A stretch of 64,000 nt of DNA from NCBI GenBank assembly GCA_002269645.1, contig NIVC01000616.1, positions 248,001 to 312,000 of the forward strand, read 5' to 3'. The notes beneath the pieces were generated by a model, which saw only the letters and a list, made by a program, of their open reading frames with translations, searched no databases and was not told the origin of the DNA. Position 1 is the first letter of the stretch; every line of letters starts with the position of its first letter. Source of the stretch: Macrostomum lignano (Eukaryota). The translations under genes were made by a program, and so were the position numbers. Positions 501 through 41,394 of this stretch are shown piece by piece.

Positions 501-1500
501 AGAATCGCCCCTCAGTTACCCCAGAGAATTGCCCCTCAGTTACCCTAGAGAATCGCCCCTCACCACCCCATAAGAATCGCCCCTCAGCCACCCCAAAAGA
601 ATCGCCCCTCAGCCACCCCAGAAGAATCGCTCCTCCACCACTCCATAAGAATCGCCCCTCAGCCACCCAAAAGAATCGCCCCTCAGCCACCCCAAAAGAA
701 TCGCCCCTCAGCCACCCCAGAAAAATCGCTCCTCCACCACTCCATAAGAATCGCCCCTCAGCCACCCCAAAAGAATCGCCCCTCAGCCGCTCCCTAAGAA
801 TCGCTCCTCCACCACTCCATAAGAATCGCCCCTCAGCCACTCCCTAAGAATCGCCCCTCAACCACTCCATAAGAATCGCCCCTCAGCCACTCCCTAAGAA
901 TCGCCCCTCAACCACTCCATAAGAATCGCCCCTCAGCCACTCCATCATAAGAATCGCCTCTCAGCCACCCCATAAGAATCGCCCCTCAGCCACCCCAAAA
1001 GAATCGCCCCTCAGCCACCCCACCCCATAAGAATCGCCCCTCAGCCACCCTATAAGAATCGCCCCTCAGTCACCCCATAAGAATCGCCCCTCAGCCACCC
1101 CACAAGATTCGCCCCTCAGCCAACCCATAAGAATCGCCCCTCAGCCACCCCATAAGAATCGCCCCTCAACCATGCACTCCATAAGAATCGCCCCTCAGCC
1201 ACCCCATAAGAATCGCCCCTCAGCCACCCCATGAGAATCGCCCCTCAGCCACCCCATGAGAATCGCCCCTCAGCCACTCCATCATAAGAATCGTTCTCAG
1301 CCACCCCATAAGAATCGCCCCTCAGCCACCCCACAAGAATCGCCCCTCAGCCACCCCACAAGAATCGCCCCTCAGCCACCCCATAAGAATCGCCCCTCAG
1401 CCACCCCATGAGAATCGCCCCTCAGCCACCCCATGAGAATCGCCCCTCAGCCACCCCATGAGAATCGCCCCTCAGCCACCCCATGAGAATCGCTCCTCAG
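501..1500. repeat. ~25-bp minisatellite (AAGAATCGCCCCTCAGCCACCCCAT)n
   Basis: Directly visible tandem array; a second array of the same unit lies at ~16165-16765. Confidence 0.95.
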
Positions 1501-1520
1501 CCAGCTCGCCGCCCCTGCAG

Positions 1521-3819
1521 GACCTGATCTTCCTGGGCACAGCCAGCTCGTACCCGTCGCCGCACCGCTGCGCCTCCGGCCTGATCGTCAGGTTCCATGC
1601 CGACGGCGACTGCTGGCTGTTCGACTGCGGCGAGTCTATTCAGGTGCAGCTGATGCGCTCGCCGGTGAAGCTGGGCCGAATCTCGCGCATCTTCATCACA
1701 CACCTGCACGGCGATCACAGCTTCGGCCTGCCGGGCCTTATCAGCACCCTGGGCGGCGGTCGCTGCGAGGCCGGCTCGGTGCTCACCGTGTGCGGGCCGC
1801 CCGGTACCCGGCAGTTCCTGCGGCAGAGTCTGGCTTATGCTAGAAGCGATCTGGTCGGGGTGAGGTCGGGGTGGTCCCCCGAGTCTGTACTCTGCTTCAT
1901 CTCGAAAGCAACTCTAGGCTGAGTCTCCTCTTGCCTCATCTCCTCTCTCCCCTTCTCTCTTGTCTCCTCTCTGCTCTCCTCTCTGTGATAGTTGCCACTG
2001 CGGGTGTAGAAACTTGTATGGTTTGAGGGGTTGGCTCGCAAGGCGGCTGGCTGGTGGCACTCGAGAGCGCCGCGCTGGACCACTGGGCCCTGGCCCTCGT
2101 CATTGATCCACAATCCGTTGCCTGTTTAAACACGCAGTGCTCAGACAAACTGTCGCTTAAGCAGCCGCTACAATCCTCCTCACTTTCAAAACTCTCTCCG
2201 AACTGCTCAGATTCGCCTCGCCATCCGAGAGCTCGCAGGCGTCCCCCTGCTGATGCCGGCGCCCGAGAATGCCCAGATGGAGGCCATCCTTGCCGCAGTC
2301 GCCAGTGACAGCCGCCAAGGCCTGCTGCCCGCCCTGCCCTACGAGATTGACATCGCCGATGCCGACCGACAACCCGACGGCACTTGGACTGTCGTGTCCG
2401 ACCAGGAGGCCGCTGCCGCTAGCGGCGGGGTCACAGTGCAGGCAGCCGCGCTCAGCCACCGGGTGCCCTGTGTGGGGTACAGGCTGGCCACCCGGGCTCC
2501 GGCCACCGGGCACTTGCAGCCGGAGCTGGCATACCAGCTGGGCCTGGCCAGATCTGGCGAATCTGCCCTGCTGGGCGAATTGAAGAGAGGCCGAACCGTG
2601 ACGACCCGATCTGGGGCTGTTATCAGGCCTGAGCAGGTGAGTGAGAATGGGCTTGGGTTAGGCTCTAACTTAAGTTGGAAACTAAATTCCCTTAGTTAAA
2701 GCTCTGATTCATCTGCAGTCTCTGAGACCCCCCAGTCACCTGAAGTCCCTGAATTTCCTTAGTTATTTACAGTTACAGAATCCCCAGAGTCACCTGAAGC
2801 CCCTAAATCCCTAGTCACCTGAAGCCCCTGAATCTCCAGTCACCTGAGGCCCCTGAATCCCCAGTCACCTGAGGCCCCTGAGGCCCCTGAGGCCCCTGAA
2901 TCCCAGTCACCTGAGGCCCCTGAGGCCCCTGAATCCCAGTCACCTGAGGCCCCTGAATCCCCAGTCACCTGAGGCCCCTGAATCCCCAGTCACCTGAGGC
3001 CCCTGAATCCCCAGTCACCTGAGGCCCCTGAGGCCCCTGAATCCCCAGTCACCTGAGGCCCCTGAGGCCCCTGAATCCCCAGTCACCTGAGGCCCCTGAG
3101 GCCCCTGAATCCCCAGTCACCTGAGGCCCCTGAATCCCCAGTCACCTGAAGCCCCTGATTCACCCGAAGTCCCTGAGTCGTCTGAAATCCGTGTCGCTGA
3201 GCCTACTAGCCTCGATTCGATGCGTTACCTCAGTCCAATAGTCAGTCCTTGAGTGTCTGGGTCCCTGAGTGTCTGAATCCTTGAGTGTCTGAGTCCTTGA
3301 GTGTCTGGGTCCTTGAGTGTCTGAGTCCTTGAGTCCCTGAGTCCCTGAGTCCTTGAGTCCCCGAGACCTTAAGTCCGTACCCAGTCAGCCGATCCGGAAA
3401 CCCGGGTGCCGCCGCAGGTGACAGCTGCTCCGCCCCCGCCGCTTCGCCTGGCAGTCTTCGGCGACACCTGCAACTCCGACCTGGCAGCCGACATGTGCCG
3501 CGGCGTCGACTGCGTGGTTCACGAGGCCACCGGGGACAATTCGCTGACTGACAGCTGCTTGGAGAAGGGCCACTCCACGCCCGCCATGGCTGCCCAGTTT
3601 GCCCGCCAAGTCGGTGCCAAATGCCTCCTGCTGACTCACTTCAGCCAGCGCTACACGGACGGAGCCGGGCCCACCGTCAGCGACGCCTCGGTGGAGCTGC
3701 TGCGGCGGCAGGCCGAGGCGGCCCTGGACGGTAGCGGCATCGACCTGCGGATGGCCGCCGACCTCCGGCAGTTCGCTGTCACCCACGAGGGCGTCAAGTT
3801 TGTGGCTGATCACGGCTGA
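1521..3819 (+). CDS. ELAC1: Short-form tRNase Z (RNase Z / ELAC1); exons 1521-1859, 2211-2636, 3418-3819; start Met not genomically evident
   Basis: DLIFLGTASSYPSP N-terminus, WLFDCGE, HLHGDH metallo-beta-lactamase motif, SHRVPCVGY, GDT, HEAT, HST, LTHFSQRY. Both introns are GT-AG and phase 0 (GGG|gtgagg...ctcag|ATT; CAG|gtgagt...cgcag|GTG). Confidence 0.95.
2790..3360. repeat. Intronic minisatellites (CACCTGAGGCCCCTGAATCCCCAGT-type and CTTGAGTGTCTGAGTC-type)
   Basis: Tandem arrays inside ELAC1 intron 2. Confidence 0.9.
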
Positions 3820-3959
3820 TGCGGCTGGTCGACTTTTTGTGCCCAACCTTCCAGAATCCCGCGTGCTCAATGACCGGCTGCCGAAGTCCCATTCTCAGCT
3901 TGGGTTTTAAAATGCGTTCCAGCTTTAATCCTTATTCTGCGATTCTAATTCTCCCCTAT

Positions 3960-4350
3960 CCCCATTTTGGTATTCTACCTAACTTTTAATCCCCAATCTC
4001 GTAATTTTCCGTAATCCTCATTTTGAGCCTCCAATTCTCGCTAATCCTCGTTTTGGGATTCTAATTATCTCTGATCCTCATTTTGGGGTTCTAATTCTCC
4101 ATGATCCTCATTTGGGATTCTAATTCTCTCTGATCCTCATTTTGGGATTTTAATTCTTCCTAATCCTCATTTTGGGATTCTAATTCTATCTAATCCCTGT
4201 TTTGGGTTTCTAATTCTCCATAATCCTCATTTTGGGATTCTAATTCTCTCTGATCCTCATTTGGGGATTCTAATTCTCCCTAATCTTCATTTTGGGATTA
4301 TAATTCTCTCTAATCCCTGTTTTGGGATTCAACCTTCCTAATCCCCAGTC
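3960..4350. repeat. Degenerate ~40-bp tandem repeat (ATCCTCATTTTGGGATTCTAATTCTC...)
   Basis: Visible periodicity downstream of the ELAC1 stop. Confidence 0.8.
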
Positions 4351-4804
4351 TAGAATTCTAAGCTTATTTAATCCTTAGTTTGGTGTTTTAAGCCTTCCAA
4401 ATCCTTGGGATTCTGATATACCCCTTCTTTGATTTCCCGTTAGGAATTGCCACCCATTTAAATTTCATATTAAAAAGTTTCCACGTGAGGCTTATTTCAA
4501 GCCTTCATTATTCATTTCCCTGTGTCAACAAATATCTCTGAGCCTGCAAGGTCCGGCCTACTAATGATTTCCTAGTAATTGCGCATTTGAACTTTGAGTC
4601 CTGCTTTCTCAAGCTTACAATCTTCACTGTGCCTGTTGCTTGTTGTTTTTTGTATTAATATAGTTCTTTTAACTGTTAGCGCTTGCGTTTTGTGCACTAA
4701 AAAATACAATGATGGTTTTAATGAAGTTTTTTGTGCTGTAGTTTCTCCTTTGTACTGTATTGATTTCTGTTAGCTAAGTAACTTCAAGACTTGCACCAAG
4801 GCGC

Positions 4805-4995
4805 CTGCCAGTGGGTGGGTAAACGCGTCTGACTCTCACCCGAGGACCCCTAAGCCCTGGTTCAATTCTGTTTCACAGCCATGAGGGAACCCCCCCCCCA
4901 CCCAAGGCAGAGAGTGTAGATACCTGTATACCCTGTGTGAGCGTGTGTATGAGTGCGTGCCTGCGTACAGCATTGGCGCGCTTGCATGTGCGAAA
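4805..4995 (+). mobile_element. Dispersed repeat, possibly a SINE remnant with a tRNA-like head; related segment at ~19600-19720
   Basis: B-box-like GGTTCAATTC at ~4859. The block ACCCTGTGTGAGCG...TACAGCATTGGCGCG.TTGCATGTGC is shared with ~19657-19720. Confidence 0.45.
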
Positions 4996-5167
4996 TGAAG
5001 CAGTGCTGGTTGGGGTTATGTTACGAGTAAAAACAAATTAAAGATTTCAGGAAACTAAAAAAGTCAAATCCAGTGCCTGTGCTTAGCGAGCAAGAGAAAA
5101 AGGGTGGCGCCCCAGCCAGGCCGATTAACAGTTAGGCTTTCCTCTTTCGTCCGTCTGACTTTGCCCT

Positions 5168-5495
5168 CTCCTTACTGCTCTCTCATTGGCTGAGCTAGAT
5201 TGGGCCTGTTCCCCTTACTGCTCTCTCATTGGCTGAGCTAGATTGGGCCTGTTCCCCTTACTGCTCTCTCATTGGCTGAGCTAGATTGGGCCTGTTCCTC
5301 TTACTGCGCTCTCATTGGCTGAGCTAGATTGGGCCTGTCCCCTTACTACTTTATCATTGGCTGAGCTAGATTGGGCCTGTCCCCTTACTACTTTATCATT
5401 AGCTGAGCTAGATTAGGCCTGCCCCTGGACTGAGTTTTCGTCCGTCTGACTTTGACCTCTCTCCTTACTGCTCCCTCATTGGCTGAGCTAAATTA
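5168..5495. repeat. ~43-bp tandem repeat with ATTGG (CCAAT-box) motifs upstream of YPEL5
   Basis: About 7 units of CTTACTGCTCTCTCATTGGCTGAGCTAGATTGGGCCTGTTCCC. Confidence 0.85.
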
Positions 5496-5805
5496 GGCGG
5501 CCTGTCTCCCAAGGCTGAGTTTTCGTCGATCTTGCGGTCACTTGTGTACATCGAGTTAAATGCTTGTTGTTCATTCTTAATTCCATATACTCCTCAGGCC
5601 GTAAACCCCGAGGAAGGAAAGCAAATTTTAGCTGCCATATTAAATTTAAGTGACAGTGCGCAAACAAACTACTGAAAAATGAGTAGACGTTCTAGTTTTT
5701 CAAAAATTTAGTTATGAAAACCAGCTAAAACGTCACTAAAATTCATGCCCCGCTGGGTACTGCGCCGCTTTCAGTAAATCCCCAGAATTCAATGCTAGCT
5801 ACAGC

Positions 5806-6162
5806 ATGGGCCGCCTGCACATTGAGCACATGGGCGGCGAGCGGGTGTTCAGCTGCGCCAACTGCGACTGTCCCCTCACCAACCGGCAGCAGCTCATCAG
5901 CACCCGGTTCACCGGTGCCACCGGTAGGGCCTTCCTGTTTAACCGGGTGGTGAACCTGGACACTAGCGAGCTGCAGGACCGGGTGATGCTCACAGGCAGG
6001 CACATGGTTCGCGATGTGAGCTGCAGGAAGTGCAAGACCAAGCTGGGCTGGGTGTACGAGTTCGCCACCGAGGAGAGCCAGCAGTACAAGGAGGGCAAGA
6101 TCATCCTGGAGAGGGCGCTCATCAATGAGAGCGAAGGCTTCCCGGATCCGGTCAAGGATTAG
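5806..6162 (+). CDS. YPEL5: Yippee-like protein 5 (zinc-binding, CTLH-complex associated), single coding exon
   Basis: [20 protein letters not shown]...[20 protein letters not shown]...[34 protein letters not shown] is close to human YPEL5 as recalled. The ATG lies 1 nt after an AG acceptor. Confidence 0.97.
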
Positions 6163-6339
6163 AGGGGGCGCCTCCGACCGCATCATGGCCGCATCTGAGC
6201 ACACATTAAAGCAGTCTAGAGACTAAAATATCTGCCAATATTTTTGTTAAATCACCTGATCGAAACTGGTTTGAAGCTTCTGTTTTTTGCGCATTCATTC
6301 TGTCATGGCATTTTTGTCGAGATTTTATTTTTTCAATTT

Positions 6340-7140
6340 GTGTCTTGAGCGCATACGTGTCTGGAACTGTCTGTGTCTTGTGCCTGTAACTGTTTCCGAG
6401 TGTCTGTAACTGTCTCGTGTGTAATTGTGTCCGAGTGCCTGTAACTGTCTGTTCTTTTTGCCTAACTGTGTCCGAGTGTCTGTAACTGTCTGTCATGTGT
6501 CTGTAATTGTCTGTCCTGTGTCTGTAACTGTGTCTTGTGTCTGTAATTGTCTGTTCTTTGTGTCTGTAACCGTGTCTAAGTGTCTGTAACTGTGTCTGAG
6601 TGTCTGTAACTGTATGTCTTCTGATTGTAACACTGTGTCTGAGTGTCTGTAACTATATGTGTCTTCTGATCGTAACTGTGTCCGAGTTTCTGTAACCGTG
6701 TCTGAGTGTCTGTAACTGTATGTGTCCTGAGTATCTGTAACTCTCTGTTCCTGTGTCTGCAACTGTGCCTCGGTGTCTGTAACTGTCTGTTCCTTGTGTC
6801 TGCAACTGTGCCTCGGTGTCTGTAACTGTCTGTTCCTGTGTCTGCAACTGTGCCTCGGTGTCTGTAACTGTCTGTTCCTTGTGTCTGCAACTGTGACTCG
6901 GTGTCTGTAACTGTCTGTTCCTTGTGTCTGCAACTGTGCCTCGGTGTCTGTAACTGTCTGTTCCTTGTGTCTGCAACTGTGCCTCGGTGTCTGTAACTGC
7001 GCCCGAGTTTCTGTAACTGTGTCTGAGTGTCTGCTCCTTGTGTCTGTAACTGTGCCTGAGTGTCTGTAGCCGTGTCTGAGTGTCTGTAACTGTCTGTGTC
7101 CTGAACGTCTGTAACTATCTGTGTCTGCCTGAGGCTGTGG
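6340..7140. repeat. Degenerate TGTCTGTAAC-based tandem repeat
   Basis: Visible periodic sequence; explains the spurious minus-strand ORFs. Confidence 0.9.
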
Positions 7141-7774
7141 CTCTGTGTCTGGGCCTCTTGTGACAGTCCTTCATATTTTCAATTTGCATTCTGTCTCGCC
7201 TCCAATCTGTCTCAGCGCGTCATTTCGCGTATTTTTTAACTGTCTGACTGTCCTGATTATTATCCCAGCAACCAGCATCGCATCTGTGGTTTGGCCTCCA
7301 GTGATCATTTATACTTCAATTTTATTGATTATTGTTGATATAAATCGCCTTAGTGATTACTATTCACAGTTAATATGTCTGTGCACGTGTAGCTCCTGAG
7401 TCGTTGTGGCTCTGTGTATATCTGAGTTTTGGTTTTTGCAGTCATTTCATAGAATAATATGATCAACACCTTTAGAGTCATTTTGGTCATCCAAGCCTTC
7501 CGTTTTTTTCATTTTTCCTGTCATTTGATTTTGATGAAGCCCAGTCTCTGTTGCTGCCGAGTCAGCTCTGGAAATATATGAGAGAATTCGCTCCAGTGTT
7601 TTCACACCTTGCCGACTGTATTTTAGTGACAGGAAACTGCAGATATTTATTCTTCGTTGCTAATTGTCCCTTCTGTCTTTTTGATTTCGGATAATTCAGC
7701 CTTGAGTCGCCTTAGAGGTTGCTCTTAGGAAATTTCCCCATATGCATGTAGTCTCTTATCTCCAAAAACCGGCC

Positions 7775-9060
7775 GTAATCCCTGTTGGATAATCGGCCCT
7801 TAATCCCCTGCAAACCCTGCTGGATAATCGGCCCTTAATCCCCTGCAAACCCTGCTAGATAATCGGCCCTTAATCCCCTGTATTCCCTGCTGGATAATCG
7901 GCCCTTAATCCCCTGCAAACCCTGCTGGATAATCGGCCCTTAATCCCCTGCAAACCCTGCTAGATAATCGGCCCTTAATCCCCTGTATTCCCTGCTGGAT
8001 AATCGGCCCTTAATCCCCTGGATACCCTGCTGGATAATCGGCCCTTAATCCCCTGCAAACCCTGCTGGATAATCGGCCCTTAATCCCCTGCAAACCCTGC
8101 TAGATAATCGGCCCTTAATCCCCTGTATTCCCTGCTGGATAATCGGCCCTTAATCCCCTGGATACCCTGCTGGATAATCGGCCCTTAATCCCCTGCAAAC
8201 CCTGCTGGATAATCGGCCCTTAATCCCCTGGATTCCCTGCTGGGCTGGATAATCGGCCCTTAATCCCCTGCAAACCCTGCTAGATAATCGGCCCTTAATC
8301 CCCTGTATTCCCTGCTGGATAATCGGCCCTTAATCCCCTGGATACCCTGCTGGATAATCGGCCCTTAATCCCCTGCAAACCCTGCTGGATAATCGGCCCT
8401 TAATCCCCTGGATTCCCTGCTGGATAATCGGCCCTTAATCCCCTGCAAACCCTGCTAGATAATCTGCCCTTAATCCCCTGGATTCCCTGATGGATAATCG
8501 GCCCTTAATCCTCTAGATACCCTGCTGGATAATCGGCCCTTAATCCCTGGATTCCCTGATGGATAATTGGCTCTTAATCCCCTGGATACCCTGCTGGATA
8601 ATTGGCTCTTAATCCCCTGGATACCCTGCTGGATAATTGGCCCTTAATCCCCTCGGCCCTTAATCCCCTGCAAACCCTGCTGGATAATCGGCCCTTAATC
8701 CCCTGGATTCCCTGCTGGATAATCGGCCCTTAATCCCCTGCAAACCCTGCTAGATAATCTGCCCTTAATCCCCTGGATTCCCTGATGGATAATCGGCCCT
8801 TAATCCCCTGGATTCCCTGATGGATAATTGGCTCTTAATCCCTTGGATACCCTGCTGGATAATTGGCCCTTAATCCCCCGGATTCCCTGCTGGATAATCA
8901 GCCCTTAATCCCCTCGGCCCTTAATCCCCTGCAAACCCTGTTGGATAATCGGCCCTTAATCCCCTGGATTCCCTGCCGGATAATCGGCCCTTAATCCCCT
9001 GGATTCCCTGCCGGATAATCAGCCCTTAATCCCCTGGATACCCTGCTGGATAATTGATTG
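7775..9060. repeat. 35-bp minisatellite (GGATAATCGGCCCTTAATCCCCTGCAAACCCTGCT)n
   Basis: Period 35 (TAATCCCCTG at 7801 and 7836). Confidence 0.95.
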
Positions 9061-9213
9061 GCCATAAATCTTACATAAAGGCTCTCCAACTACCACAGAG
9101 ATTCGCGCTGTACAATCAACCTCCTGACTAGATTAAGTTCGAAAAATATCTTTTAGCTTAAACTTAGCATAATTATAGTTTTGCCGGTAAACTTTGAGAT
9201 CTAAGAATCCCAG

Positions 9214-12200
9214 CGGGATGTTTCAATCTGCTGGAGACGGCGAGCTCTGGTCCTCCTACACCAGCAACGACATCGGAGCCGCAGCCTCCGCAGCAGCAGT
9301 GCGCCTACTTTGTTGCTAGGAAGCAGCGCCAGTGCCGCTTGAGACCGCTGCCCGGACAGTCGCTGTGCGTTGAGCACTGCCCTGCCGGCTCTGCCGCCCC
9401 CGGGGACAGCCGCGGTCACCGAATCCCCTGCCCCCTGGATCCCAAGCACACCGTGTACGCATCCCAGCTGGACAGGCACCTGACCCGGTGCAACTCCCGA
9501 CCCCGCCTGGTGGGCCAGCCCTTCTACCGGCAGGGCGTCAACTCTTGCGACTCGCTCGAGGATCGAACCCGCGACCTCAGCTGGAGCTTGCTGGACCCGC
9601 CGGAGCACGTGCACCGCCGGCTGGACCAGATCATCGCCCTGGTCGACTCGCTGATCCCCGACTCCGATGTTGCCGACCAGCCGGGCGACGCCGACCAGCC
9701 CATCTGGCCCATGATGGCCGCCCAGCTGAGCAATGCAGCCAGGCGGGCCGCCACTTCTTTCAAGTCCAACAAGCGGCGGATTAATAAGAAGCCGCCGGCA
9801 CAGAAGGTGCAGAGCTACTCGTCCTCCTCCTCAGATGATGATGATGAGGATGATGATGGGGAAGGCGGAGGCTTTGAGAACGGCGAGCCGAGGGCGGTGA
9901 CCAACCTGAGACAGCAGGCGAATCTCCTGGCTCTGGCTGAGAAGTCGCAGCTGCTCCGGAGTCCCTGCGCCTACGTTGAGTTTGGCGCCGGCAAAGGCCA
10001 CCTGTGCCACTGGGTGGCTCGCTACTGGTTCGAGTCCAATAGTAAGAAAGGGGAAGGTGAGCCCGCGGACAGCAACGCCTACCTGTTGATTGATCGCGGC
10101 TCGGTGAGGAACAAGCTGGACTGCGCGCACAAATATTCGGGCCAGCGATTCTCCCGGATTCGGGTAGACATTGCCGACTTGCTGCTGCGGCCGCTGCTTC
10201 TTCCGCCTGCTGAGGGTCCGATGAAAACCGCAGTTGCTGGCAGTGCGGCGTCAAGTAGAACACTTTCCACGACAGCAAAGACTTCGGTTCCCATAGCAAC
10301 CATTGAGAAGAAGCCTGTTTCCATGGAAACCAAATCGTCTGATCCGGTAGCGTCAGTTTCCATCGACACAGAAACCTCGGTTTCCATAGCAACTATTAGC
10401 AAGTCGGTTTCTATAGAAAACAAACCGTCCGATCCGATAGCGTCTGTCAACGCAAAATCCGTTGCCATAGCAACTAAAACTTCAGCTACCACAGCAACCG
10501 TTGAAAGGAAACCAGTTTCCATAGAAGCCAAGCCGTCTAATCCTATAGCGTCTGTTGACACTGTGTTTGTTTCCATGGAAACAGAAAGCTCTGTTCCCAA
10601 AGAAATCATTGAGAAGAAGCCTGTATCTGTGGAAACTGAACCGTCTGACCCTTTGGCGTTTGTCATCGCGGATTCCGTTTCCATGGAAACAGAAACCTTG
10701 GTTTCCGTAGAAACAAAACCATCTGATCCTGTATCATCTGTAGACACAGTGTCTGTTTCCATGGCAACCACTGACTCGGACCCAATAGCCTCCGCCGTTG
10801 GCAATCCTGTTTCGGAAACGCCCGCTTCTTCCAAGCAGAAAGGAGGAAAAAAGTTGGCTGCACCTGCCGTGACAACATCGGCCGCTGATGTTCGAGCGGC
10901 ATCCAGGTGCGGAGTCACGGCCCTGGGCAAGCACCTGTGCGGAGCGGCCACGGATCTGGCACTGCGGTGTCTGGCGGGACTGGACTCTGATGCAGAAGAC
11001 GGCAATAGCAGGTGATTGTCCTATTGAGCTCAGTGCATGTCGCTAAACTTCTTTGGTCACATTAGCAGTATAAAGGCTTAGGTATACTCAGCAACATCGA
11101 AAAGTCGCCACTCTGTGCGCCAGTGAGCAACTTCTATTGGAATATTCTGAAATAGAAGATACGAGAAAACTGATTGGGGTAGCTTTACTCCGTCCAACCC
11201 TCGGACACCGCTCCCCCCACTTCATTCCTCAACTGGTCTGCCGTGGCGTAGCTGAGTTGGGTCACTCGCAAAAATTGAGAAACTTCACCTGCACTCTAAA
11301 AAGTGGCAACCACAGACGGAACCACAGAACTTTTAAAACACTTCTTTCTTTTTTACCAGTGACTTTTTTGCCTTTTTAATCAGTCGAAAGGCTCAGCCTA
11401 TCGCATTCTCAAAAATTTTCTTTATTTTTCAAAGTCTAATAGTAATACTAATAATTGATTGCACCTGCTCTAATGGGCAGATGTGCAGCCGACAGCTCAG
11501 CCACAGCTATTGCGCGGCGCATCTGAAGGCTGCGTACGGCTGTTCAGTCCAATTAAGGACTGGGGGGTCGCCACACACACCCTTAATTACCCCAGCTAAT
11601 GCTGGCACCCATTTTACAGCTGGGTGAACTGAAGCAATGTAGAGGTTGCATGTCTTGCTCAAGGACACAAATTGTTCCCGAGTTGGGTCGAGAATCGAAC
11701 CCCCTTGACCTCCAAGTCGTGAGTCCGATGCTCTGACCACTGGGCTGCAACCCCTATGGTCCTTATACTTGAAGGTGTCAGTAATTTCTCATAAATTATT
11801 TCATTTTTAATTGAGGAAACATGTTGCTCCAGCCTTGCGCTGCAAAATTTGATGTTCAGCAGTGGGTCTCCCCTGACCTGAGCATGCAAGCCTGAGCAGC
11901 AAGTTGTGGTGACATAGTGACACGATGAACTTTGCTATAGGTTGCATGCACTGTAGTGTTGACTCACTAGCAGTGGAGTTGTTATTGATCGGCTTAGAGA
12001 TTGTATTTTATTCCACCCCACCCCATGCGCGCGTTTGAATCTGTCTGCACCCACCACCTCAGTGCTAAATAAACAGCCTAGCTCTCAAGCGAGCACCTTT
12101 TACTCACTCCTGCAATTCCACACTTCTGCCTCGCTTAACAAAGTTATCACAAATTATTTCATTTTTAATTGAGGAAACATGTTGCTCCAGCCTTGCGCTG

Positions 12201-13389
12201 CAAAATTTGATGTTCAGCAGTGGGTCTCCCCTGACCTGAGCATGCAAGCCGCTGGCTCAGCTGTCATTCGTGCCTTCCACACTGCAGAAGCCACGGCTGC
12301 AGCGATAGCAAACGGGCGCGCATTGCGGGCCAACTGGCTGAGGCCGACAGGTCCGCAGGCGTCGGGCCTGTGGGCGGCGTGATCGCGCTGTGCTGCCACC
12401 ACCGCTGCCTCTGGTCCGCCTACGTTGGCAAGCGGCGAATGGCAAGTTTGGGCATCGGGCCGGAGGACTTCCACGCCATCAGCCGCATGGCCGGCTGGGC
12501 CACCTGCGCCAGCAAAGCGGCGCGGCTGAAGCGGAAGCCGCAGGAACACAGGTGTATTGTCGAGCTTCACCTTTTATTCACTCTTGTCTAGTTTGCTATT
12601 TAAACTGATTGACACATCAAGCACACCATAAAGTGAAGCACCAAGCATATGAAGTAACACATGAAGCACATCATAGAGTAACACATTAAGCATGGAGTGA
12701 CACACCAAGCACACCATGGAGTGACACACCAAGCACATCATGGAGTGACACACGGAGCACACCATGGAGTGACACACAGGGAGCACACCATGGAGTGACA
12801 CACGGAGCACACCATGGAGTGACACACAGGGAGCACACCATGGAGTGACACACGGATCACATCATGAAGTGACACACGGAGCACACCCTGGAGTGACACA
12901 TGGAGCACACCCTGGAGTGACACATGGATCATATCATGGAGTGACACACGGAGCACACCCTGGGGTGACACACGGATCACATAATGGAGTGACACACGGA
13001 GCACACCCTGGGGTGACACACGGATCACATAATGGAGTGACACACGGAGCACACCCTGGAGTGACAAACCAAACACATCATAGAGTGACACCAAGCAAAT
13101 TATGGAGTGACACACCAAGCACATCATAGAGTGATACACCAAGCACATCATAGAGTGACACACCAAGCACATCATAGAGTGACACACCAAGCACATCATG
13201 GAGTGACACACCACTGCAACTCATCATTGCAGACGGGAGCTCATCGGTCTGAAGTGCAAGCGGCTTATTGACTCGGGCCGGGTGGCCTTCCTCACGGAGC
13301 AGCTGGGCTACTCAGCCAGGCTCGTGCGCTATGCTAAGCGGTCAGACACGCCAGAGAACTGCGCCCTGCTCTTCTCCAGGGGCATCTGA
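9214..13389 (+). CDS. TRMT13: tRNA:m(4)X modification enzyme TRM13; exons ~9214-11011, 12351-12551, 13233-13389; 5' end unresolved
   Basis: CCCH finger CAYFVARKQRQC...CVEH, U11-48K-type finger CPLDPKHTVY..LDRHL.RC, VEFGAGKGHL, IDRGSVRNKLD, GKHLCGAATDLALRC, ALCCHHRC, ISRMAGWATC, CKRLIDSGR, ENCALL. Both introns are phase 2 and GT-AG. AATAAA at ~13533. Confidence 0.93.
11474..11754 (-). mobile_element. tRNA-derived SINE with CORE-like central domain, near full length, in TRMT13 intron
   Basis: Minus-strand head has A and B boxes (AGCCCAGTGGTCAGAGC...GGTTCGATTC). Body GGTGAACTGAAGCAATG...TGTCTTGCTCAAGGACACA resembles the MIR/CORE domain. Related copies at ~18313-18488 and ~63830-63985. Confidence 0.8.
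12690..13212. repeat. Intronic ~24-26-bp minisatellite (GGAGTGACACACGGAGCACACCAT)
   Basis: Tandem array filling TRMT13 intron 2. Confidence 0.9.
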
Positions 13390-13717
13390 GTTCTTAGTTG
13401 CAGCACTTCCTGAAAAAAATCCAGTGACACGTGTCGCCTCCTTTAGCACAGCTCTAATAATTATCAAAAAGTTCAGAAATATTCGAGCATTTTTCTAGTG
13501 TACTACCGGCATATACTACTAATTGTTCTGCCAATAAAATAGACCGTATTGTTATTGTTGGTTAAGTTATATTATAAATCGAGAGGGTGGTTCGGAATGC
13601 GCGACACTATGCGGATGATTTATGAAATCCATGTTGTGCTCACTTTTTATTTAGCCGATTCTGTCTTATTTACTTCTGTTACATGTTTAGGTTGGGTAGT
13701 AATGGCTGTCTCAAAAT

Positions 13718-13758
13718 CTGTCTGTCGGTCTGCATGTCTGTCTGTATGTCTGTCTGCC

Positions 13759-13791
<33 letters not shown>

Positions 13792-13794
13792 TAG

Positions 13795-13855
<61 letters not shown>

Positions 13856-13858
13856 TAG

Positions 13859-13923
<65 letters not shown>

Positions 13924-13933
13924 GTCTGTCTAT

Positions 13934-13980
<47 letters not shown>

Positions 13981-14025
13981 CCTGTCTGTCCGTCTGCCTG
14001 CCTGTCTGTCTGTCTGTCTGTCTGT
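13718..14025. repeat. (GTCT)n microsatellite between TRMT13 and C8orf76
   Basis: Directly visible. Confidence 0.97.
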
Positions 14026-14134
14026 CCTTCTTGTTGTGTGTCAGCCTATCCGCCCGTCCCTGTCGCACCAGATTTAAGTGCAAGCCAGCTGAGCATGTCA
14101 TGCTATAGATAAACTCATTTCTCGTCAAGCTCAG

Positions 14135-17100
14135 ACATTGGAAATTTCGCGACTGTTCCAGGAGGGATTCGACTTTGATTTCGACGAAAATGGGGGCTCT
14201 GGCGATGATGGAAGAGGCAGCTCAAACTCCGAGCGGGATGACTACCAGCCCCGGGTGCTGACTGAAGGTGTAAGTGCATCTTTAATTTATATCCTTATGT
14301 CTCTAGATCAGCTTCTGAACAGTAGCAAGGAAAGCATGCGAAACGAATTGTTTGGCAGCGTGTTCCAATGTGATTTCGCACTGATGCGCTCGTAGTGGTA
14401 GTTTAACCGAGCTGTTGAGTAGAGATGGCCAGCTGTGGTTGCAGAATAAGAATTAACAAAACCCCTTCAGTATGTTTGTGCGTATATGTGTTCGTTTGGA
14501 CCGCTGCAAAGTGCTGTAATATCACAATTTTATGCTTGAGCTCCAATCTTAAAATTTCACACAACGCTAAGAATGTAGCCAGGGAACGAAAAAGAGTGGC
14601 CTATCTTGGCGCCTTGTCAGATAAAATGGCACTCCCTCAGATAAAATGGCACTCCCTCAGATAAAATGGCACTCCCTCAGATAAAATGGCACTCCCTCAG
14701 ATAAAATGGCGCTCTCTCAGATAAAATATCGCTCCCTCAGATAAAATGACACTCTCTCAGATAAAATGGCACTCTCTCAGATAAAATATCGCTCCCTCAG
14801 ATAAAATGACACTCTCTCAGATAAAATGGCACTCCCTCAGATAAAATGGCACTCTCTCAGATAAAATGGCGCTCCCTCAGATAAAATGGCACTCTCTCAG
14901 ATAAAATGGCGCTCCCTCAGATAAAATGGCGCTCTCTCAGATAAAGTGGCACTCCCTCAGATAAAGTGGCGCTTCTTCAGATAAAGTGGCGCTCCCTCAG
15001 ATAAAGTTGCGCTTTCTCAGATAAAGTGGCGCTTCCTCAGATAAAGTGGCGCTTCCTCAGATAAAATAGTGCTTCTTCAGATAAAGTGGCGCTTCCTCAG
15101 ATAAAGTGGCGCTCCCTCAGATAAAGTTGCGCTTTTTCAGATAAAATGGCGCTCCCTCATATACAATGGCGCTCCTTCAGATAAAATGGCGCTCCCTCAC
15201 AAAATGGCGCCCTAAAGTGAAATGGCGCCCCTCGAATCGAGAAGCGCCCGACCCAAAAAAAGTCAGGGCCGCACCCGCATTCGCAGATTAAATCGCTATA
15301 AATAACAGTGCCGCCAGATTGCCTGAATTTCGGCTACCCTCGGCTCCCCTACTCAACTCAGTGGTTCCGCGACTCCGATCAGCCGCAGCGCGATGACGAC
15401 CAGCGGCTGCTCGAGCTGAAGCTGCGCGCGGATCTGCTGTACTTCGAGGCGCGGTACGACAATGCGCTGGAAGACTATTTGACCGCGTTGGGTGCGTGCC
15501 GATGGGGATCTGAGAATCTGAGACAGAGCTGAGCACTGTCTTCTGTCCTCTTGTCTTCGTGTCTTCTTCGCCCTTATGAGCCCTACCCGACATCTGAAGA
15601 ATCCATGAATGTTCTGAAGAATCTCTGAATGTCCTGAAGAATCTCTGAATGTCCTGAAGAATCTCTGAATGTCCTGAAGAATCTCTGAATGTCCTGAAGA
15701 ATCTCTGAATGTCCTGAAGAATCTCTGAATGTCCTGAAAAATCTCTGAATATCCTGAAGAATCTCTGAATGTCCTGAAGAATCTCTGAATGTCCTAAAGA
15801 ATCTCTGAATGTCCTGAAGAATCTCTGAATGTCCTGAAGAATCTCTGAATGTCCTGAAGAATCTCTGAATATCCTGAAGAATCTCTGAATGTCCTGAAGA
15901 ATCTCTGAATGTTCTGAAGAATCTCTGAGTGTCCTGAAGAATCTCTGAATGTCCTGAAGAATCTCTGAATGTCCTGAAGAATCCATGAATGTCCTGAAGA
16001 TTGACAGCCTTCCTACACCGCCAGACCTGCTGCCCGCCAGCAACGCCATCGTGCGGCGAGACATCACCGAGGCCGTCGCCCGCTGCCAGGCCATTCTGGG
16101 TCGGGGTCAGGAGGCTCTGCAGATTGCCAGGAAGCAGGTGAGTCAGGCTAGCGTGATATCCCTATAAGTCGCCCCTTAGCCACCCCACAAGAATCGCCCC
16201 TCAGCCACCCCATCATAAGAATCGCCCCTCAGCCACCCCACAAGAATCGCCCCTCAGCCACCCCATAAGAATCGCCCCTCAGCCACCCCATAAGAATCGC
16301 CCCTCAGCCACCCCACAAGAATCGCCCCTCAGCCACCCCATAAGAATCGCCCCTCAGCCACCCCTCAAGAATCGCCCCTCAGCCAACCCATAATAAACGC
16401 CCCTCAACCACCCTTCAAGAATCGCCCCTCAGCCACCCCATAAGAATCGCCCCTCAGCCACCCCATAAGAATCGCCCCTCAGCCACCCCATGAGAATCGC
16501 CCCTCAGCCACCCTATAAAAATCGCCCCTCAGCCACCCCATAAGAATCGCCCCTTAGCCACCCCATAAAAATCGCCCCTCAGCCACCCCATAAAAATCGC
16601 CCCTCAGCCACCCCATAAAAATCGCCCCTCAGCCACCCCATAAGAATCGCCCCTCAGCCACCCCACAAGAATCGCCCCTTAGCCACCCCATAAGAATCGC
16701 CCCTCAGCCACCCCAAAAAAATCGCCCCTCAGCCACCCCATAAGAATCGCCCCTCAGCCACCTCAACCCCCTCCCCTCCATCCCAGCTGGACGAGTGCAG
16801 CACGGACGATCAGTTCATGGCCGCCTACAACCTGCTGCTGGACATCTTCCTGCAGCCGGACATCGCCGCTCAGCACTCGGACAGCCACCGGCTCGCCCTG
16901 CAGAACTGCCTGCTGCTCAACCCGCTCTGCGACCGGCTCTGGCGGCGGCTGTCGCGGATCTACGCTGAGCTGGGCCGCTCGGACAGGCGGACCACCTGTC
17001 TGCAGGCTGCTCAGTGAGTCTGGGGCTGGCTGGACCTGCTTACAGCCTCTTCTGTATTTTCCTAATTTACTGATTCATTATTGTAAACTATCGAAATTCT

Positions 17101-17737
17101 TATTGCTCCTAATGCCATGCTTCCAAGCTCCCTAACTGCCATGGTGTAAAGCCTCAAATTTAGAACCCCATCCCACCCTCAGATCCCCACCTCACCCTCA
17201 GATCCCCATCCAATCCTCAGATCCCCATTCAATCCTCAGATCCCCATCCAATCCTCAGATCCCCATCTCACCCTCAGATCCCCATCCAATCCTCAGATCC
17301 CCATCTCACCCTCAATCCCCATCCAATCCCCAGATCCCGATCCCACCCTCAGATCCCCATCTCACCCCCAGATCCTCATCACATCCCCACACCCCCCCCA
17401 ATATCTGAGATCCCTATTATCCCATGCTTGCCGTGTCGCCATCCCGAACTGCAGGCACATCACCACAGTCCTGGCCGTTCAGGAGAGCAACCTGAAGCTG
17501 CAGACCAGCCACGGCTCGGCGGGCAGCGATCAGAGAACGCCCATAGCTGGCAAGGCGATGTCGCTGATTAGTTTCCATGGCAACTATCGCAACCTGCCCT
17601 ACTCTGGCCGGCTGTGGGAGCGGCTGAGTTACAAGCAGGCCAATGTCGGGTTTGATCGGAAGAGAATCGATTGCGGCGGCAACGAGGCTCTGTTTGACTC
17701 CATTTACTTCTCTGATTTGTCCCAGCCGAGCGCTTGA
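14135..17737 (+). CDS. C8orf76: C8orf76-like TPR-type protein; exons 14135-14267, 15309-15491, 16025-16137, 16787-17013, 17455-17737; no genomic ATG
   Basis: STQWF...LKLRADLLYFEARYDNALEDY...SNAIVRRDITEAVARCQAILGRGQEALQIA...ALQNCLLLNP...LWRRLSRIYAELG parallels human C8orf76 (PQWF...KFKGDLAY...[23 protein letters not shown].EAL) as recalled. The exons sum to 939 nt with consistent phases. The first donor choice (GAAG|gtgtaa) is less certain. Confidence 0.8.
14620..15215. repeat. 20-bp intronic minisatellite (ATAAAATGGCACTCCCTCAG)n
   Basis: Directly visible. Confidence 0.95.
15590..16000. repeat. 20-bp intronic minisatellite (GAAGAATCTCTGAATGTCCT)n
   Basis: Directly visible; causes the 15288-16094 minus-strand ORF. 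Confidence 0.95.
16165..16765. repeat. 25-bp minisatellite, same unit as 501-1500, in C8orf76 intron 3
   Basis: AAGAATCGCCCCTCAGCCACCCCAT units in the same orientation. Confidence 0.95.
17165..17400. repeat. Intronic ATCCCCATCCCACCCTCAG-type repeat
   Basis: Visible in C8orf76 intron 4. Confidence 0.8.
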
Positions 17738-17761
17738 CTTCAGCTATAAACTTATGTTGCT

Positions 17762-18090
17762 GGTTTCTAAAAATAGCGACTTTAGGCCTTCCCCAAAATA
17801 TCCAGGTTTCTAAAAATAGCAACTGTAGGCTTCTCCAAGATCCAGGTTTCTTAAAATAGCAACTGTAGGCTTCTCCAAAATCCAGGTTTCTAAAAATAGC
17901 AACTGTAGGCTTCTCCAAAATCCTGGTTTCTAAAAATAGCAACTGTAGGCTTCTCCAAAATCCAGGTTTCTAAAAATAGCAACTGTAGACTTCTCCAAGA
18001 TCCAGGTTTCTAAAAATACAAACTATAGGCTTTCCCAAAATTTAGCTTTCTAAAGATAGCAATTATATACTTTTTCAAAATCCAAGCTTC
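17762..18090. repeat. 40-bp tandem repeat (CCAGGTTTCTAAAAATAGCAACTGTAGGCTTCTCCAAAAT)
   Basis: Period 40; starts just after the C8orf76 stop. Confidence 0.9.
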
Positions 18091-18312
18091 TTAAACTAGC
18101 TTGGTGTTTGTTTAGAATAAGCAGAATCGCCTTTGGTATGGATATTTATTTGCATTTTTGCGTGAAGTGTAAATACATTTATCCTGATGTGCGTACTTCA
18201 ATTATGCATGTCGCTGCATTTGGCTCTGCTACACGAATCAGTTTACAGTGTTGAGCGCTTTATTGATATTTTCTCTTTTAACTAACATTTACCCGGATGT
18301 CAACCCAGATAC

Positions 18313-18488
18313 CACACACACCCTCAATTACCCCAGCTAATGCTGGCACCCATTTTACAGCTGGGTAAACTAAAGCAATGCAGAGTTAAGTGTCTTGCTC
18401 AAGGACACAAATTGTTCCAATTGGGTTGTGAATCGAACTCCCGACCTTTCAGTCGTGAGTCTGATGCTCTGACCACTAGGCTACAACT
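18313..18488 (-). mobile_element. CORE-like tRNA SINE, 5' part
   Basis: Near-identical to 11575-11754. Confidence 0.75.
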
Positions 18489-19859
18489 CCTAAAAAGAAG
18501 CGCCAAAAACTTTAGATGCCAAAGCTCAATGGGAGATTCTTTGGCTCCGAGAGAGAATTCATGAAATTTCAAGGTTTATTGGGACTTGGAAGGATTGTTG
18601 AAATGATGTAGCTCGATCGTAGGGATTTTCTAAGATGTCAGGGCTCATGGGGGAATTGCTGAGATGCCTTAGGCTCATTGAAAAAATCGGTGAAATTCTG
18701 TGGCTCAGAGGGGAACTGCTGAATGTCAAAGATTCATGAGGCTCATGGGGGCTTTCTGAACTGCTGAGGCTCACCAGGGATTGCTCAGACGCATTGAGCC
18801 AAGGCTCACAGGATATGCTGATATCTCAGGCTAGATAGCTGCTTTTAGGGCTGATGCTTTTTTGCTTTAAATAACAACCTTATAATTTTAACAGTTTAAT
18901 GGCTGCAAATGTTCACTATAGTTCAAAACCTACATGTAGTTTCTTTTTAAAAATCTTTCCTCCCCAATTGGGGGGCGCAGATTGCTAGTCCACTATACTA
19001 AAAATGTTTATAGTACACTACAAGCTAAAATGGACAAAGCGGCCCCTTCTCGTATTGTTATTTCCAGTACGTTTCTCAGAACTCACCATGAGCTGGAGTG
19101 AGCAGGAATGTACACGCGCCAACTCTTTGAGGAACGATATACGCTTGTACAATAAGAGTACAGCCAAGGCCAGAGCAACATATAGCTGTGCAACTGAGAA
19201 TCAAGTCTCTCCTCAAGGGTCCGGCAGTGTACAAATACCTTCACAACTGACGTGCGCAAGTCTCACCCACAGTTTTCTGTCTCAAAGTCTCTGCAAGCAA
19301 TGCTGTGACCTGAAATACTTTTAATTGCGAATTAAGTCGGATTGATTCTTCATTGATCTCGGGGTTAATCGGTATTTTCAGGTAAGCTGAGAGCCATCTT
19401 TTTAACTCGTGGCCCAAACCATTGTTAAATACCGCAGTTTTTAATATCAAAAAAACTTGTCGATGAGCTTAAAGTACATGACGTTTTTTTAACTCTGCTG
19501 TCAACTTAAATCTGTCATGTTCGAAAGAAGGGCATGAGGCGGCTTCATTTGGCCCGGGCTTGTGGGCACGAAAATTGGCTGAGGGAGTTCACCAAGAGAG
19601 CCAACCACCAAGACACAGAGAGTGTACATGCCATTAAAAAGTCAGGGCCGCTTTGTACACCCTGTGTGAGCGGGTGCATGATTGGCGCCTGTGTACAGCA
19701 TTGGCGCGTTTGCATGTGCTCAGGAGTCAGCGGAATTGGGGCAGAATTGCCGTCAGCGCTGGTTGCGAGACCATGTCACCGAGGGCAGCCCCTCCTGTAG
19801 TCTCCTGTAGTTTAAGTGAGTCATGTCATATAGGAGCACATCTGCCAGCCTGCTAAAGA

Positions 19860-20350
19860 GGAGAGAAGAAGAGAGGAAAGGAAATTGGAGAGGAGAGGAG
19901 AGGAGAGGAGAGGAAAGGAGAGGAGAGGAGAGGAGAGGGAGGAGAGGGGAGGAGAGGAGAGGGGAGGAGAGGAGAGGGGAGGAGAGGAGAGGAAAGGAGA
20001 GGAGAGGAGAGGAGAGGAAAGGAGAGGAGAGGAAAGGAGAGGAGAGGAAAGGAGAGGAGAGGAAAGGAGAGGAGAGGAAAGGAGAGGAGAGGAGAGGAAT
20101 GGAGAGGAGAGGAGAGGAGAGGAGAGGAGAGGAATGGAGAGGAGAGGAGAGGAGAGGAGAGGAGAGGAGAGGAGAGGAAAGGAGAGGAGAGGAGAGGAAA
20201 GGAGAGGAGAGGAAAGGAGAGGAGAGGAAAGGAGAGGAGAGGAGAGGAAAGGAGAGGAGAGGAATGGGAGGAGAGGAGAGGAGAGGAGAGGAGAGGAAAG
20301 GAGAGGAGAGGAGAGGAGAGGAAAGCTGGAAAGGAGAGCTGAGAGGAAAG
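19860..20350. repeat. (AGGAG)n microsatellite
   Basis: Directly visible. Confidence 0.97.
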
Positions 20351-20445
20351 GAAAGGGAGGGGCCGGGGGCGTGGCCCTCCTTTCTTGCGAATAATGATTC
20401 TACTTGGATTATGCATGGTATTCTGCAGATCAGCTGTCATCAAGG

Positions 20446-21091
20446 ATGTCGGCCTCTGCCGGACCTGCCGCTAAATCGCGCGAGGAGAAGCACGAGTCAA
20501 CCCTGAAGCTGGTGCTGAGCAAACTGCTCCAGAATGCTGAGTTCGAGGAGCTCGCGCTGCACTGGTTCAAGCAGAGGAAGGTCTGAAGCTTTGAGAACTA
20601 GACTTATTGGTTTGTTTCAATTCGTTTGTTTGTGTCTGTATACTGCTGCACTTCTATAAGCCGCTAGTAAATGAAAACACTGCTTGATTTATGCATGCTC
20701 TAGATCTGGCTTCTTTTATATTAATAAACCAAATTACTGGATTAAACAATCAAACAAGCCAGTCAAATAAACCAATCAATCAAATCAATCAACCCAGGCG
20801 GTGCACAATCGCGAGTGCCAGTGAGTCGATGACCGCTACGAGCGCATGGGCATGGACTACCGCGAGGAGCAGACAGATGCCGACATCAAGACCTCCTTCG
20901 AGCGGCTGTCCGCTCTGTCGTCCGAGCCAGAGAAGCGTCAGGCTGTTGCCGAGCTGTGCGAGTGGCTGCGCTACCAGAGCATGCCGCCCAGGGTTCACCA
21001 CCTGTACCCTGACGAGCTCAGAGCCGCTTGCCAGGCCGCTCACTTCAACAAGATTGCCGACCTGGCAGACCTGATCAACGGCTTCTTTTAG
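20446..21091 (+). CDS. Unknown ~142-codon helical protein; exons 20446-20580 and 20798-21091; in-frame TGA at 20822-20824 (gene or pseudogene)
   Basis: Both exons have the host's strong GC3 bias. AAG|gtctga...aacccag|GCG is phase 0. No family recognised. Confidence 0.55.
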
Positions 21092-21354
21092 CTGGCGTTG
21101 CTTCCGTTATTCTTTGTTTAAGGCCAGTGTGTGATCTTACTTACCATTACTGTCAGGTGCCTACAGTGCATGCAGAAAATGCTACAACAACAGAAAAATA
21201 TAAAGTTCATCTTTTCTTCTCGTTTGTACGAGTTTTATTTTTTTAATACAGCTTTCAAACTTGTGAAAAATAAAACTTTTTCTTCAAAACTTTTCCATCA
21301 AGAAGGAAGTGCTTGGTTGCTGTGGTCAAAGTACGTATTTTGAGTCGGGTTTGA

Positions 21355-27300: not shown

Positions 27301-27650
27301 CTCCCAGATCCTCAGTTTGAGCAAAGCATCTCCCAGATCCTCAGTTTGAGCAAAGCATCTCCCAGATCCTCAGTTTGAGCAAAGCATCTCCCAGATCCTC
27401 AGTTTGAGCAAAGCATCTCCCAGATCCTCAGTTTGAGCAAAGCATCTCCCAGATCCTCAGTTTGAGCAAAGCATCTCCCAGATCCTCAGTTTGAGCAAAG
27501 CATCTCCCAGATCCTCAGTTTGAGCAAGCATCTCCCAGATCCTCAGTTTGAGCAAAGCATCTCCCAGATCCTCAGTTTGAGCAAAGCATCTCCCAGATCC
27601 TCAGTTTGAGCAAAGCATCTCCCAGATCCTCAGTTTGAGCAAAGCATCGA
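21355..27650. repeat. 6.3-kb satellite, 29-bp unit (CAGTTTGAGCAAAGCATCTCCCAGATCCT) with 28-31-bp variants
   Basis: Period 29 (GATCC at 23461 and 23490). Confidence 0.98.
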
Positions 27651-27811
27651 TCCCAAATCTTCAGTTTCAGCGAAAAATAACAGGAAGAGGAGAATCCTGC
27701 ACACCAAACGCGTTGATTTTCGATTATTTTAATTTTTTTGGCAAGCAGAAGATTTCGCATCAACTACAATACAGTCATTCCTGCTCGATGTAATTTTTGG
27801 TTTCACACCTG

Positions 27812-41100: not shown

Positions 41101-41394
41101 TGAATTGCATTTCAGTTGATTGCCTAATATGACGTTATTGCTGCCAGCGAGCCCTCGGGACTGGAATTTGCAACCGGTCTATTATCAATTGCTATCGTGA
41201 GAACACTGCATGGCTACCGCAGTTGTGGGGTGTGCGGCACTTATATTAATCATCTGTTTGTTGATCAGCTAAAAATGCAGAGCCATTACGTATAAAATGG
41301 GATGCAGCTTCAACAGACCTGCACATGCCGCTTCTGTGAGACAGCTCTCAGCGATTATTGCCTCCCTCTCTTTACTTCGTCCAAAGCCTCGCAG

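Follow-up and report, generated by a model that had tools for sequence, protein, structure and literature searches.

The flatworm Macrostomum lignano carries a run of at least seven genes on one strand, mostly conserved and of a housekeeping type: TRIP13, an OSR1-type kinase, ELAC1, YPEL5, TRMT13, a homologue of C8orf76 and an orphan gene (gene 5). The last five of them lie in the 64,000-nucleotide (nt) stretch analyzed here, positions 248,001 to 312,000 of scaffold NIVC01000616.1 (hereafter the window). Trans-splicing of these five genes to the spliced leader (SL) of this species is well supported, since the deposited starts fall at acceptors and the ATG of the SL is in frame with genes that lack an ATG. 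It is also plausible that they share one pre-mRNA.

Both SL trans-splicing and operons have been documented for M. lignano (PMC8629364; Wudarski et al. 2017, PMC5730564). The species uses a single 35-nt SL, CGGTCTCTTACTGCGAAGACTCAATTTATTGCATG, whose 3' end is ATG (PMC8629364). About 30% of its genes are trans-spliced, and 15% belong to operons, the largest of which have nine genes (Ustyantsev & Berezikov 2021, PMC8629364). An example of an SL 3' tag is CTCAATTTATTGCATG, and the terminal bases of the SL are …GCATG. It is established that the 3'-terminal AUG of a flatworm SL is used to initiate translation (Cheng et al. 2006, J Biol Chem 281:733, as cited in PMC12582326). The initial annotation of the window, made from the letters of the DNA, had presumed a flatworm with SL trans-splicing, and rightly so: the DNA is that of M. 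lignano, and the first exons of the run behave as trans-splice acceptor exons.

The window was compared with its scaffold in assembly Mlig_3_7 (GCA_002269645.1), and 13,547 of the 13,547 overlapping bases were identical. The deposited annotation was produced by the TBONE pipeline, in which 'transcriptional units' from RNA sequencing (RNA-seq) are cut at peaks of SL reads and at poly(A) reads; units that fall into one cluster at 95% identity have a common gene-name prefix. The assembly had been polished with Pilon, for which RNA-seq reads were used beside genomic reads. Duplicated copies of the region were compared on three scaffolds, including NIVC01001020.1 (loci L001 and L004), for which the fetched DNA reaches furthest. 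We also looked for the gene names and symbols of the run in the supplements of PMC5730564, PMC5173321 and PMC5816591, and found no match except an entry for TRIP13.

Acceptors and start codons supplied by the spliced leader

The deposited coding sequences (CDSs) on this scaffold and on two duplicated scaffolds begin right after an AG and are flagged partial. They start at 1521 for ELAC1 (cCTGCAG/, the slash marking the exon border), at 5775/5776 for YPEL5 (cTTTCAG/), at 9234 for TRMT13 and at 14162 for C8orf76 (tTCCAG/). ELAC1, TRMT13 and C8orf76 lack an ATG of their own; joining the SL ATG to the exon opens all three in frame, giving MDLIFLGT for ELAC1, METASS or MTASS for TRMT13 and MTLEIS or MEGFDF for C8orf76. 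The two TRMT13 products correspond to a coding frame that starts at 9234 or at 9237 (the next AG in the window lies at 9235-9236), either of which is in frame with the SL ATG. C8orf76 likewise has two acceptors, gctcag/14135, where older models start, and ttccag/14162, and both are in frame. Residue 1 of ELAC1 aligns to residue 2 of RNase Z and ELAC1 chains of known structure, and the genomic frame therefore lacks exactly one methionine. Taken from sequence and annotation, the AUG of the SL would serve as the initiator in ELAC1, TRMT13 and C8orf76.

The remaining two genes start on codons of their own. In YPEL5 an SL ATG would run straight into a TAA, and the gene's own ATG stands 31 nt inside the exon; in gene 5 the acceptor ttCTGCAG/ at 20428 is followed by 17 nt and then by an ATG at 20446. 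Four of the six acceptors match the published M. lignano acceptor motif [T/C]TNCAG (PMC8629364) in the window; the TRMT13 site matches only in copy L001, and GCTCAG does not match. The initial annotation had placed each first coding segment at or just after an AG acceptor, which holds for 1520, 14134 and 20428. It does not hold for 5804 (YPEL5) and 9213 (TRMT13): the deposited 5' end of YPEL5 follows cTTTCAG/ at 5774, and at both 5804 and 9213 the SL ATG joined to the exon is out of frame and the deposited starts lie elsewhere. One UniRef model of ELAC1 begins 18 nt upstream of 1521, and this suggests alternative acceptor use near the edge of the 25-bp array upstream of ELAC1.

Two of these acceptors differ between the copies. 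At the start of TRMT13, copy L001 reads ctgCAG/GAG (9998-10000), whereas the window (9231-9233) and the third copy (L003 site 13569-13571) read ctgCTG/GAG. At the second C8orf76 acceptor, the window (14158-14161) and the third copy read ttCCAG/GAG, whereas L001 (24667-24670) reads ttCATG/GAG. Both changes replace acceptor bases by those with which the SL ends (…GCATG). In the simplest reading these variants are probably scars of polishing with SL-bearing reads; if the acceptors were overwritten in this way, they would indirectly place SL reads at exactly these junctions. For splice-motif mining this is a warning that some acceptors of Mlig_3_7 may have been overwritten by SL bases during RNA-seq-based polishing. 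It is unlikely that the variants are real, in which case a trans-splice site would have been lost and, in one C8orf76 copy, a genomic ATG captured where the SL otherwise donates the AUG. If true, this would be a snapshot of a gene escaping from SL dependence and from its operon.

Extent of the run and the question of a shared transcript

The co-orientation of the five window genes, as first described, was confirmed: gene calls place no opposite-strand gene between them, and the three scaffolds agree. ELAC1 had been taken as the first gene of the unit, which turned out to be wrong, because its position at the left boundary is due to the window edge and not to biology. In each of the three copies, ELAC1 is preceded on its strand by an OSR1/SPAK-type kinase (deposited kinase protein, 622 aa; a homology search with kinase exon 1 gave no match). 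Upstream of the kinase and again on the same strand lies TRIP13; it is seen only on NIVC01001020.1, where the fetched DNA extends far enough. The order kinase, ELAC1, YPEL5, TRMT13, C8orf76 is identical in the three duplicated scaffolds, and NIVC01001020.1 (L001, L004) shows gene 5 downstream as well. Between L001 and the window the nucleotide identity is 91-97%, and the tandem arrays are collinear. Any reading of the window should thus take into account that its edge cuts the unit off.

We lean towards the view that at least some junctions among the run genes are polycistronic, and we consider it clearly less likely that all five genes form one unit. In the mechanism that we propose, each mRNA would be capped by trans-splicing of the single 35-nt SL onto its first-exon acceptor, and the ATG at the SL 3' end would act as the initiator codon for ELAC1, TRMT13 and C8orf76. 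At least some neighbours would come from one polycistronic pre-mRNA that is resolved by 3' end formation and SL trans-splicing, and tandem arrays and transposon fragments would later have expanded the once short intercistronic spacers to 0.75-3 kb. The best candidates for co-transcription are TRIP13–kinase–ELAC1 and TRMT13–C8orf76.

Four lines of evidence point this way. First, ELAC1 on NIVC01000616.1 is named Mlig034454g7, and TRIP13, two genes upstream of it, is named Mlig034454.g1/g5/g13 and flagged TRANSSPLICED and neoblast-enriched. From the common prefix Mlig034454 we infer that at least one assembled unit held both TRIP13 and ELAC1 sequence. Second, a chimeric UniRef model from an older assembly (P0137) opens with the final TRMT13 exon, at its first base, and goes on into C8orf76 from exon 2 onward; chimeric gene models have been taken as traces of polycistronic precursors and as evidence of operons in PMC12582326. 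Third, the fraction of pyrimidines on the sense strand of non-repeat spacer DNA upstream of C8orf76 is 0.55-0.61, compared with 0.54 in introns, 0.495 in exons and 0.505 in the remainder of the window. Fourth, seven consecutive genes on the same strand have a chance of about 1/64, and the remainder of the window is mixed in orientation.

The distances between the genes can be judged against published values. In M. lignano intercistronic distances are inflated by repeats; trans-spliced neighbours peak at about 100 bp after repeat subtraction, and operons are called by a repeat-subtracted distance below 1 kb (PMC8629364). We subtracted repeats with a limited mask, made with Tandem Repeats Finder (TRF) and self-BLAST only, and made use of candidate poly(A) hexamers. 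By this measure the TRMT13–C8orf76 spacer falls to about 220-400 nt and passes the 1-kb rule, while the ELAC1–YPEL5 spacer (about 360-1165 nt) and the YPEL5–TRMT13 spacer (about 930-1000 nt) are borderline. TRMT13 and C8orf76 had been singled out as the tightest pair, and indeed their raw gap of 745 nt is the smallest. The C8orf76–gene 5 spacer retains about 1400-1600 nt and fails the rule with this mask. Of the five-gene trans-spliced operon originally proposed, trans-splicing and co-orientation stand, and the step from C8orf76 to gene 5 does not by the published distance rule with the repeats that could be masked. The description of the gaps as mostly tandem repeat applies only to YPEL5–TRMT13 (66%, TRF); the other gaps contain 29-42%.

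Alternatively, these could be independent monocistronic genes, each trans-spliced to the SL and each with its own promoter in a repeat-rich spacer, with trans-splicing trimming the outron only. The common orientation would then be the remnant of a broken-up ancestral operon or simple chance. This is a possibility that we take seriously without favouring it, and several observations weigh on its side and against a shared pre-mRNA. About 60% of the trans-spliced genes of M. lignano lie outside predicted operons (PMC8629364), and the raw gaps of the run are kilobase-sized (0.75-3 kb; 745-3071 nt). In L001 the models of ELAC1, YPEL5, TRMT13 and gene 5 carry four different unit prefixes (the name of C8orf76 was not seen), so the published RNA-seq assemblies did not join these genes there; transcriptional units of M. 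lignano break in repeat-rich spacers, as the authors themselves warn (PMC8629364). The C8orf76–gene 5 spacer, still above 1 kb after repeat removal, has a pyrimidine fraction of 0.495 and thus no intron-like strand bias, and P0137 contains frameshifts. Finally, a dispersed element described below occurs on the + strand only in the spacers of the run and could be associated with promoters. What independent genes would leave to be explained is the row of seven genes on one strand, the presence of ELAC1 in the transcriptional-unit cluster of TRIP13, the model that joins TRMT13 and C8orf76, and the intron-like strand bias in the spacers upstream of C8orf76.

The dispersed element measures about 45-90 nt, has the core ACCCTGYGTGAGCGKGTGYATGA and is always in + orientation. 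It is found in the window at 4930-4952, before YPEL5, and at 19659-19681, before gene 5, and twice just upstream of the kinase (L004 2112-2134 and 2708-2730, equal to L002 585-607 and 1180-1202). All copies lie in spacers of this run, and none was found in the other 43 kb of the window. The element may derive from a transposon, act as an internal promoter or serve as a processing signal. As an internal promoter it could count against a shared transcript, and, linked to the variant acceptors described above, there is the possibility that such a spacer-confined promoter on the + strand is splitting an old operon of at least seven genes.

The initial annotation had further seen a functional cluster in the presence of two tRNA enzymes, and this is not supported, since they are two of at least seven genes, are not adjacent and have unrelated fellow members. 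The idea of a tRNA-processing operon, with ELAC1 (which removes 3' trailers) and TRMT13 (which 2'-O-methylates position 4) retained in one unit so that they are co-regulated, would draw on the fact that both enzymes act on tRNA and belong to the same co-oriented run. We consider it quite improbable, because YPEL5 stands between the two, and TRIP13, the OSR1-type kinase, YPEL5, C8orf76 and the orphan gene have no common theme. Moreover, if about 0.5% of genes are tRNA-related, which is our own rough estimate, two in a seven-gene run have p ~5e-4, so a few such runs per genome are expected by chance, and in one of the duplicated copies a TRMT13 interrupted by a retrotransposon is tolerated. The two tRNA enzymes in the run are most likely a coincidence.

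Barely credible is a run of ordinary cis-spliced genes whose 5' untranslated or ATG-bearing first exons are hidden in the spacers, without any trans-splicing: the spacers are long enough for small exons of this kind, but the deposited 5' ends derive from SL-read peaks and coincide exactly with acceptors, all three genes lacking an ATG are in frame with that of the SL, TRIP13 in the unit cluster of ELAC1 carries the flag given above, and the two acceptor differences between copies mimic the SL 3' end, as expected if SL-bearing reads were used in polishing.

Gene models, repeats and neighbouring features

The identities first assigned to the genes, namely ELAC1, YPEL5, TRMT13, C8orf76 and an unknown gene 5, were upheld by Pfam and by structure matches, and the coordinates of the genes, spacers and flanking features are compiled in Table 1. 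In the window, GC content is moderate overall and high in the exons, and tandem arrays are very numerous. No SL RNA gene, tRNA gene or Rfam family was found in it.

Table 1 Features of the same-strand run and its surroundings, in window coordinates
Feature	Position	Strand	Description
25-bp tandem array	501..1503		about 40 copies (TRF); ends 17 nt before the ELAC1 acceptor
ELAC1 (short tRNase Z)	1521..3819	+	exons 1521-1859, 2211-2636, 3418-3819; 388 codons plus stop
ELAC1–YPEL5 spacer	3820..5774		1955 nt, 29% tandem repeat; arrays 4012-4330 and 5170-5421; ATTAAA at 4469, 5037 and 5639
YPEL5	5775..6162	+	single exon; Yippee domain (Pfam); own ATG 5806, stop 6160-6162
YPEL5–TRMT13 spacer	6163..9233		3071 nt; arrays 6357-7093 and 7780-9054; ATTAAA at 6205
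TRMT13	9234..13389	+	exons 9234-11011, 12288-12551, 13233-13389; 732 codons; TRM13 and zf-U11-48K (Pfam)
TRMT13–C8orf76 spacer	13390..14134		745 nt; AATAAA at 13533; (TCTG)n 13717-14026
C8orf76/DUF5588 homologue	14135..17737	+	exons 14135 (or 14162)-14269, 15362-15491, 16061-16137, 16787-17013, 17455-17737
C8orf76–gene 5 spacer	17738..20428		2691 nt, 30% tandem repeat; 40-mer array 17762-18100; (AGAGG)n 19857-20322
Gene 5 (orphan)	20429..21091	+	exons 20429-20580, 20798-21091; 142 aa when intact; AATAAA at 21269
29-bp-unit array	21359..27674		6.3 kb; downstream of gene 5
Fibrinogen-C-domain exon	27838..28170	-	first minus-strand gene; ends the co-oriented run

ELAC1 matches Pfam Lactamase_B and Lactamase_B_4 (metallo-beta-lactamase/tRNase Z) and contains HLHGDH, which fits the HxHxDH motif. 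Its best solved structure is human ELAC1 (3zwf; E = 9.5e-58, residues 1-365). The 388-aa model agrees with another copy and with human ELAC1. The isoform deposited on NIVC01000616.1 has 285 aa and uses an alternative exon-3 acceptor at 3450-3451, which leads to a frameshift and truncation. For YPEL5, an exact look-up of the 118-aa protein gave no match; the deposited model is a 5'-partial open reading frame (ORF) of 128 aa.

Exon 1 of TRMT13 is 98% identical to an M. lignano protein, the next best match reaching 31%. The 98% match excludes a dinoflagellate origin, which co-oriented GC-rich genes and trans-splicing might have suggested. Within its methyltransferase region, exon 1 holds an insert of about 230 aa (window 10200-10800) made up of degenerate repeat units, each about 33 aa long (…KPVSIETKPSDPIASV…), and two copies (732 and 730 aa) keep this insert in frame. 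In L001 a 10-kb long terminal repeat (LTR) retrotransposon on the minus strand (L001 10813-20836) sits within TRMT13 exon 1, at the equivalent of about 10043-10046 of the window, and carries a 1240-aa ORF with reverse transcriptase, RNase H and integrase. The deposited TRMT13 product of L001 (498 aa) omits a conserved portion of the TRM13 domain, and this copy of the gene is probably impaired.

The C8orf76 homologue matches DUF5588 with 35.3 bits against a cutoff of 30, and its exon borders were fixed with M. lignano UniRef models. The gene had been thought to end at 17017. It has, however, an additional exon (17455-17737) that carries it to a stop at 17737, and the last gap of the run is thereby 2.7 kb long. 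No family was found for gene 5, and its N-terminal 53 aa found relatives only in M. lignano among 1.84 billion representatives searched. In the copy of the window, a CGA to TGA change puts an in-frame stop at 20822-20824, and the gene is deposited as an 81-aa product from the ATG at 20846. The same change creates a donor-like GTGAGT site. In other copies gene 5 encodes 142 aa, and P0138, a protein from another data set, shares the N-terminal allele of the window copy but retains the arginine.

As to the repeats, the 25-bp family upstream of ELAC1 (…TCGCCCCTCAGCCACCCCATAAGAA…) also fills intron 3 of C8orf76 (16169-16762), and each unit has an acceptor-like CCTCAG motif (self-BLAST). A SINE-like element (short interspersed nuclear element) derived from a tRNA is present in two minus-strand copies, at 11507-11760 in TRMT13 intron 1 and at about 18312-18492 in the C8orf76–gene 5 spacer; ARAGORN called no tRNA gene in either copy. 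Outside the run, the remainder of the window holds features of mixed orientation at 32603-35647 (+), 41302-41940 (+), 46303-47894 (-) and 48172-49569 (-), and it includes a 1014-aa Sel1/TPR/zf-MYND protein encoded by a single ORF and an ankyrin-repeat ORF.

Comparison with known systems

Among the operons of parasitic flatworms (PMC12582326), the Schistosoma pair of cytochrome b-c1 subunit 7 and enolase resembles the run in being a same-strand pair with a trans-spliced downstream gene. The operon candidates described there differ from the run in that they are defined by gaps of 300 bp or less and mostly comprise two genes, and none of them involves the genes of the window. The ATG-less frames that start at an acceptor are like those of Schistosoma, where the SL AUG initiates translation (Cheng et al. 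2006, as cited in PMC12582326); in the run, the use of this AUG is read from the genome and its annotation. In Caenorhabditis elegans, operons of the SL2 type are similar in size, and their pre-mRNA is likewise resolved by 3' end formation and SL trans-splicing. However, about 100 bp separate their genes and a specialised leader, SL2, is used, whereas a single SL has been described in M. lignano and the raw gaps of the run measure 745-3071 nt, so that the run is not of the SL2 type.

The closest counterparts are the operons of M. lignano itself (PMC5730564, PMC8629364). The repeat-subtracted distances of the run, about 0.2-1.6 kb, depart from their mode of about 100 bp, and co-transcription of the run is our inference. 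In other respects the two agree: they share the species and its single 35-nt SL, they have neighbours on the same strand with trans-spliced downstream members, their spacers are inflated by tandem repeats and transposons, and their members are mostly conserved with human. A run of five to at least seven genes also falls within the published range, the maximum being nine. Operons with repeat-inflated spacers have already been published genome-wide for M. lignano, and the run would be an ordinary case of them; if confirmed, it would be one more, fairly long operon of five to at least seven genes, unsurprising to specialists. Its local value lies in the corrected gene models and in three clear cases in which the start codon would be supplied by the SL.

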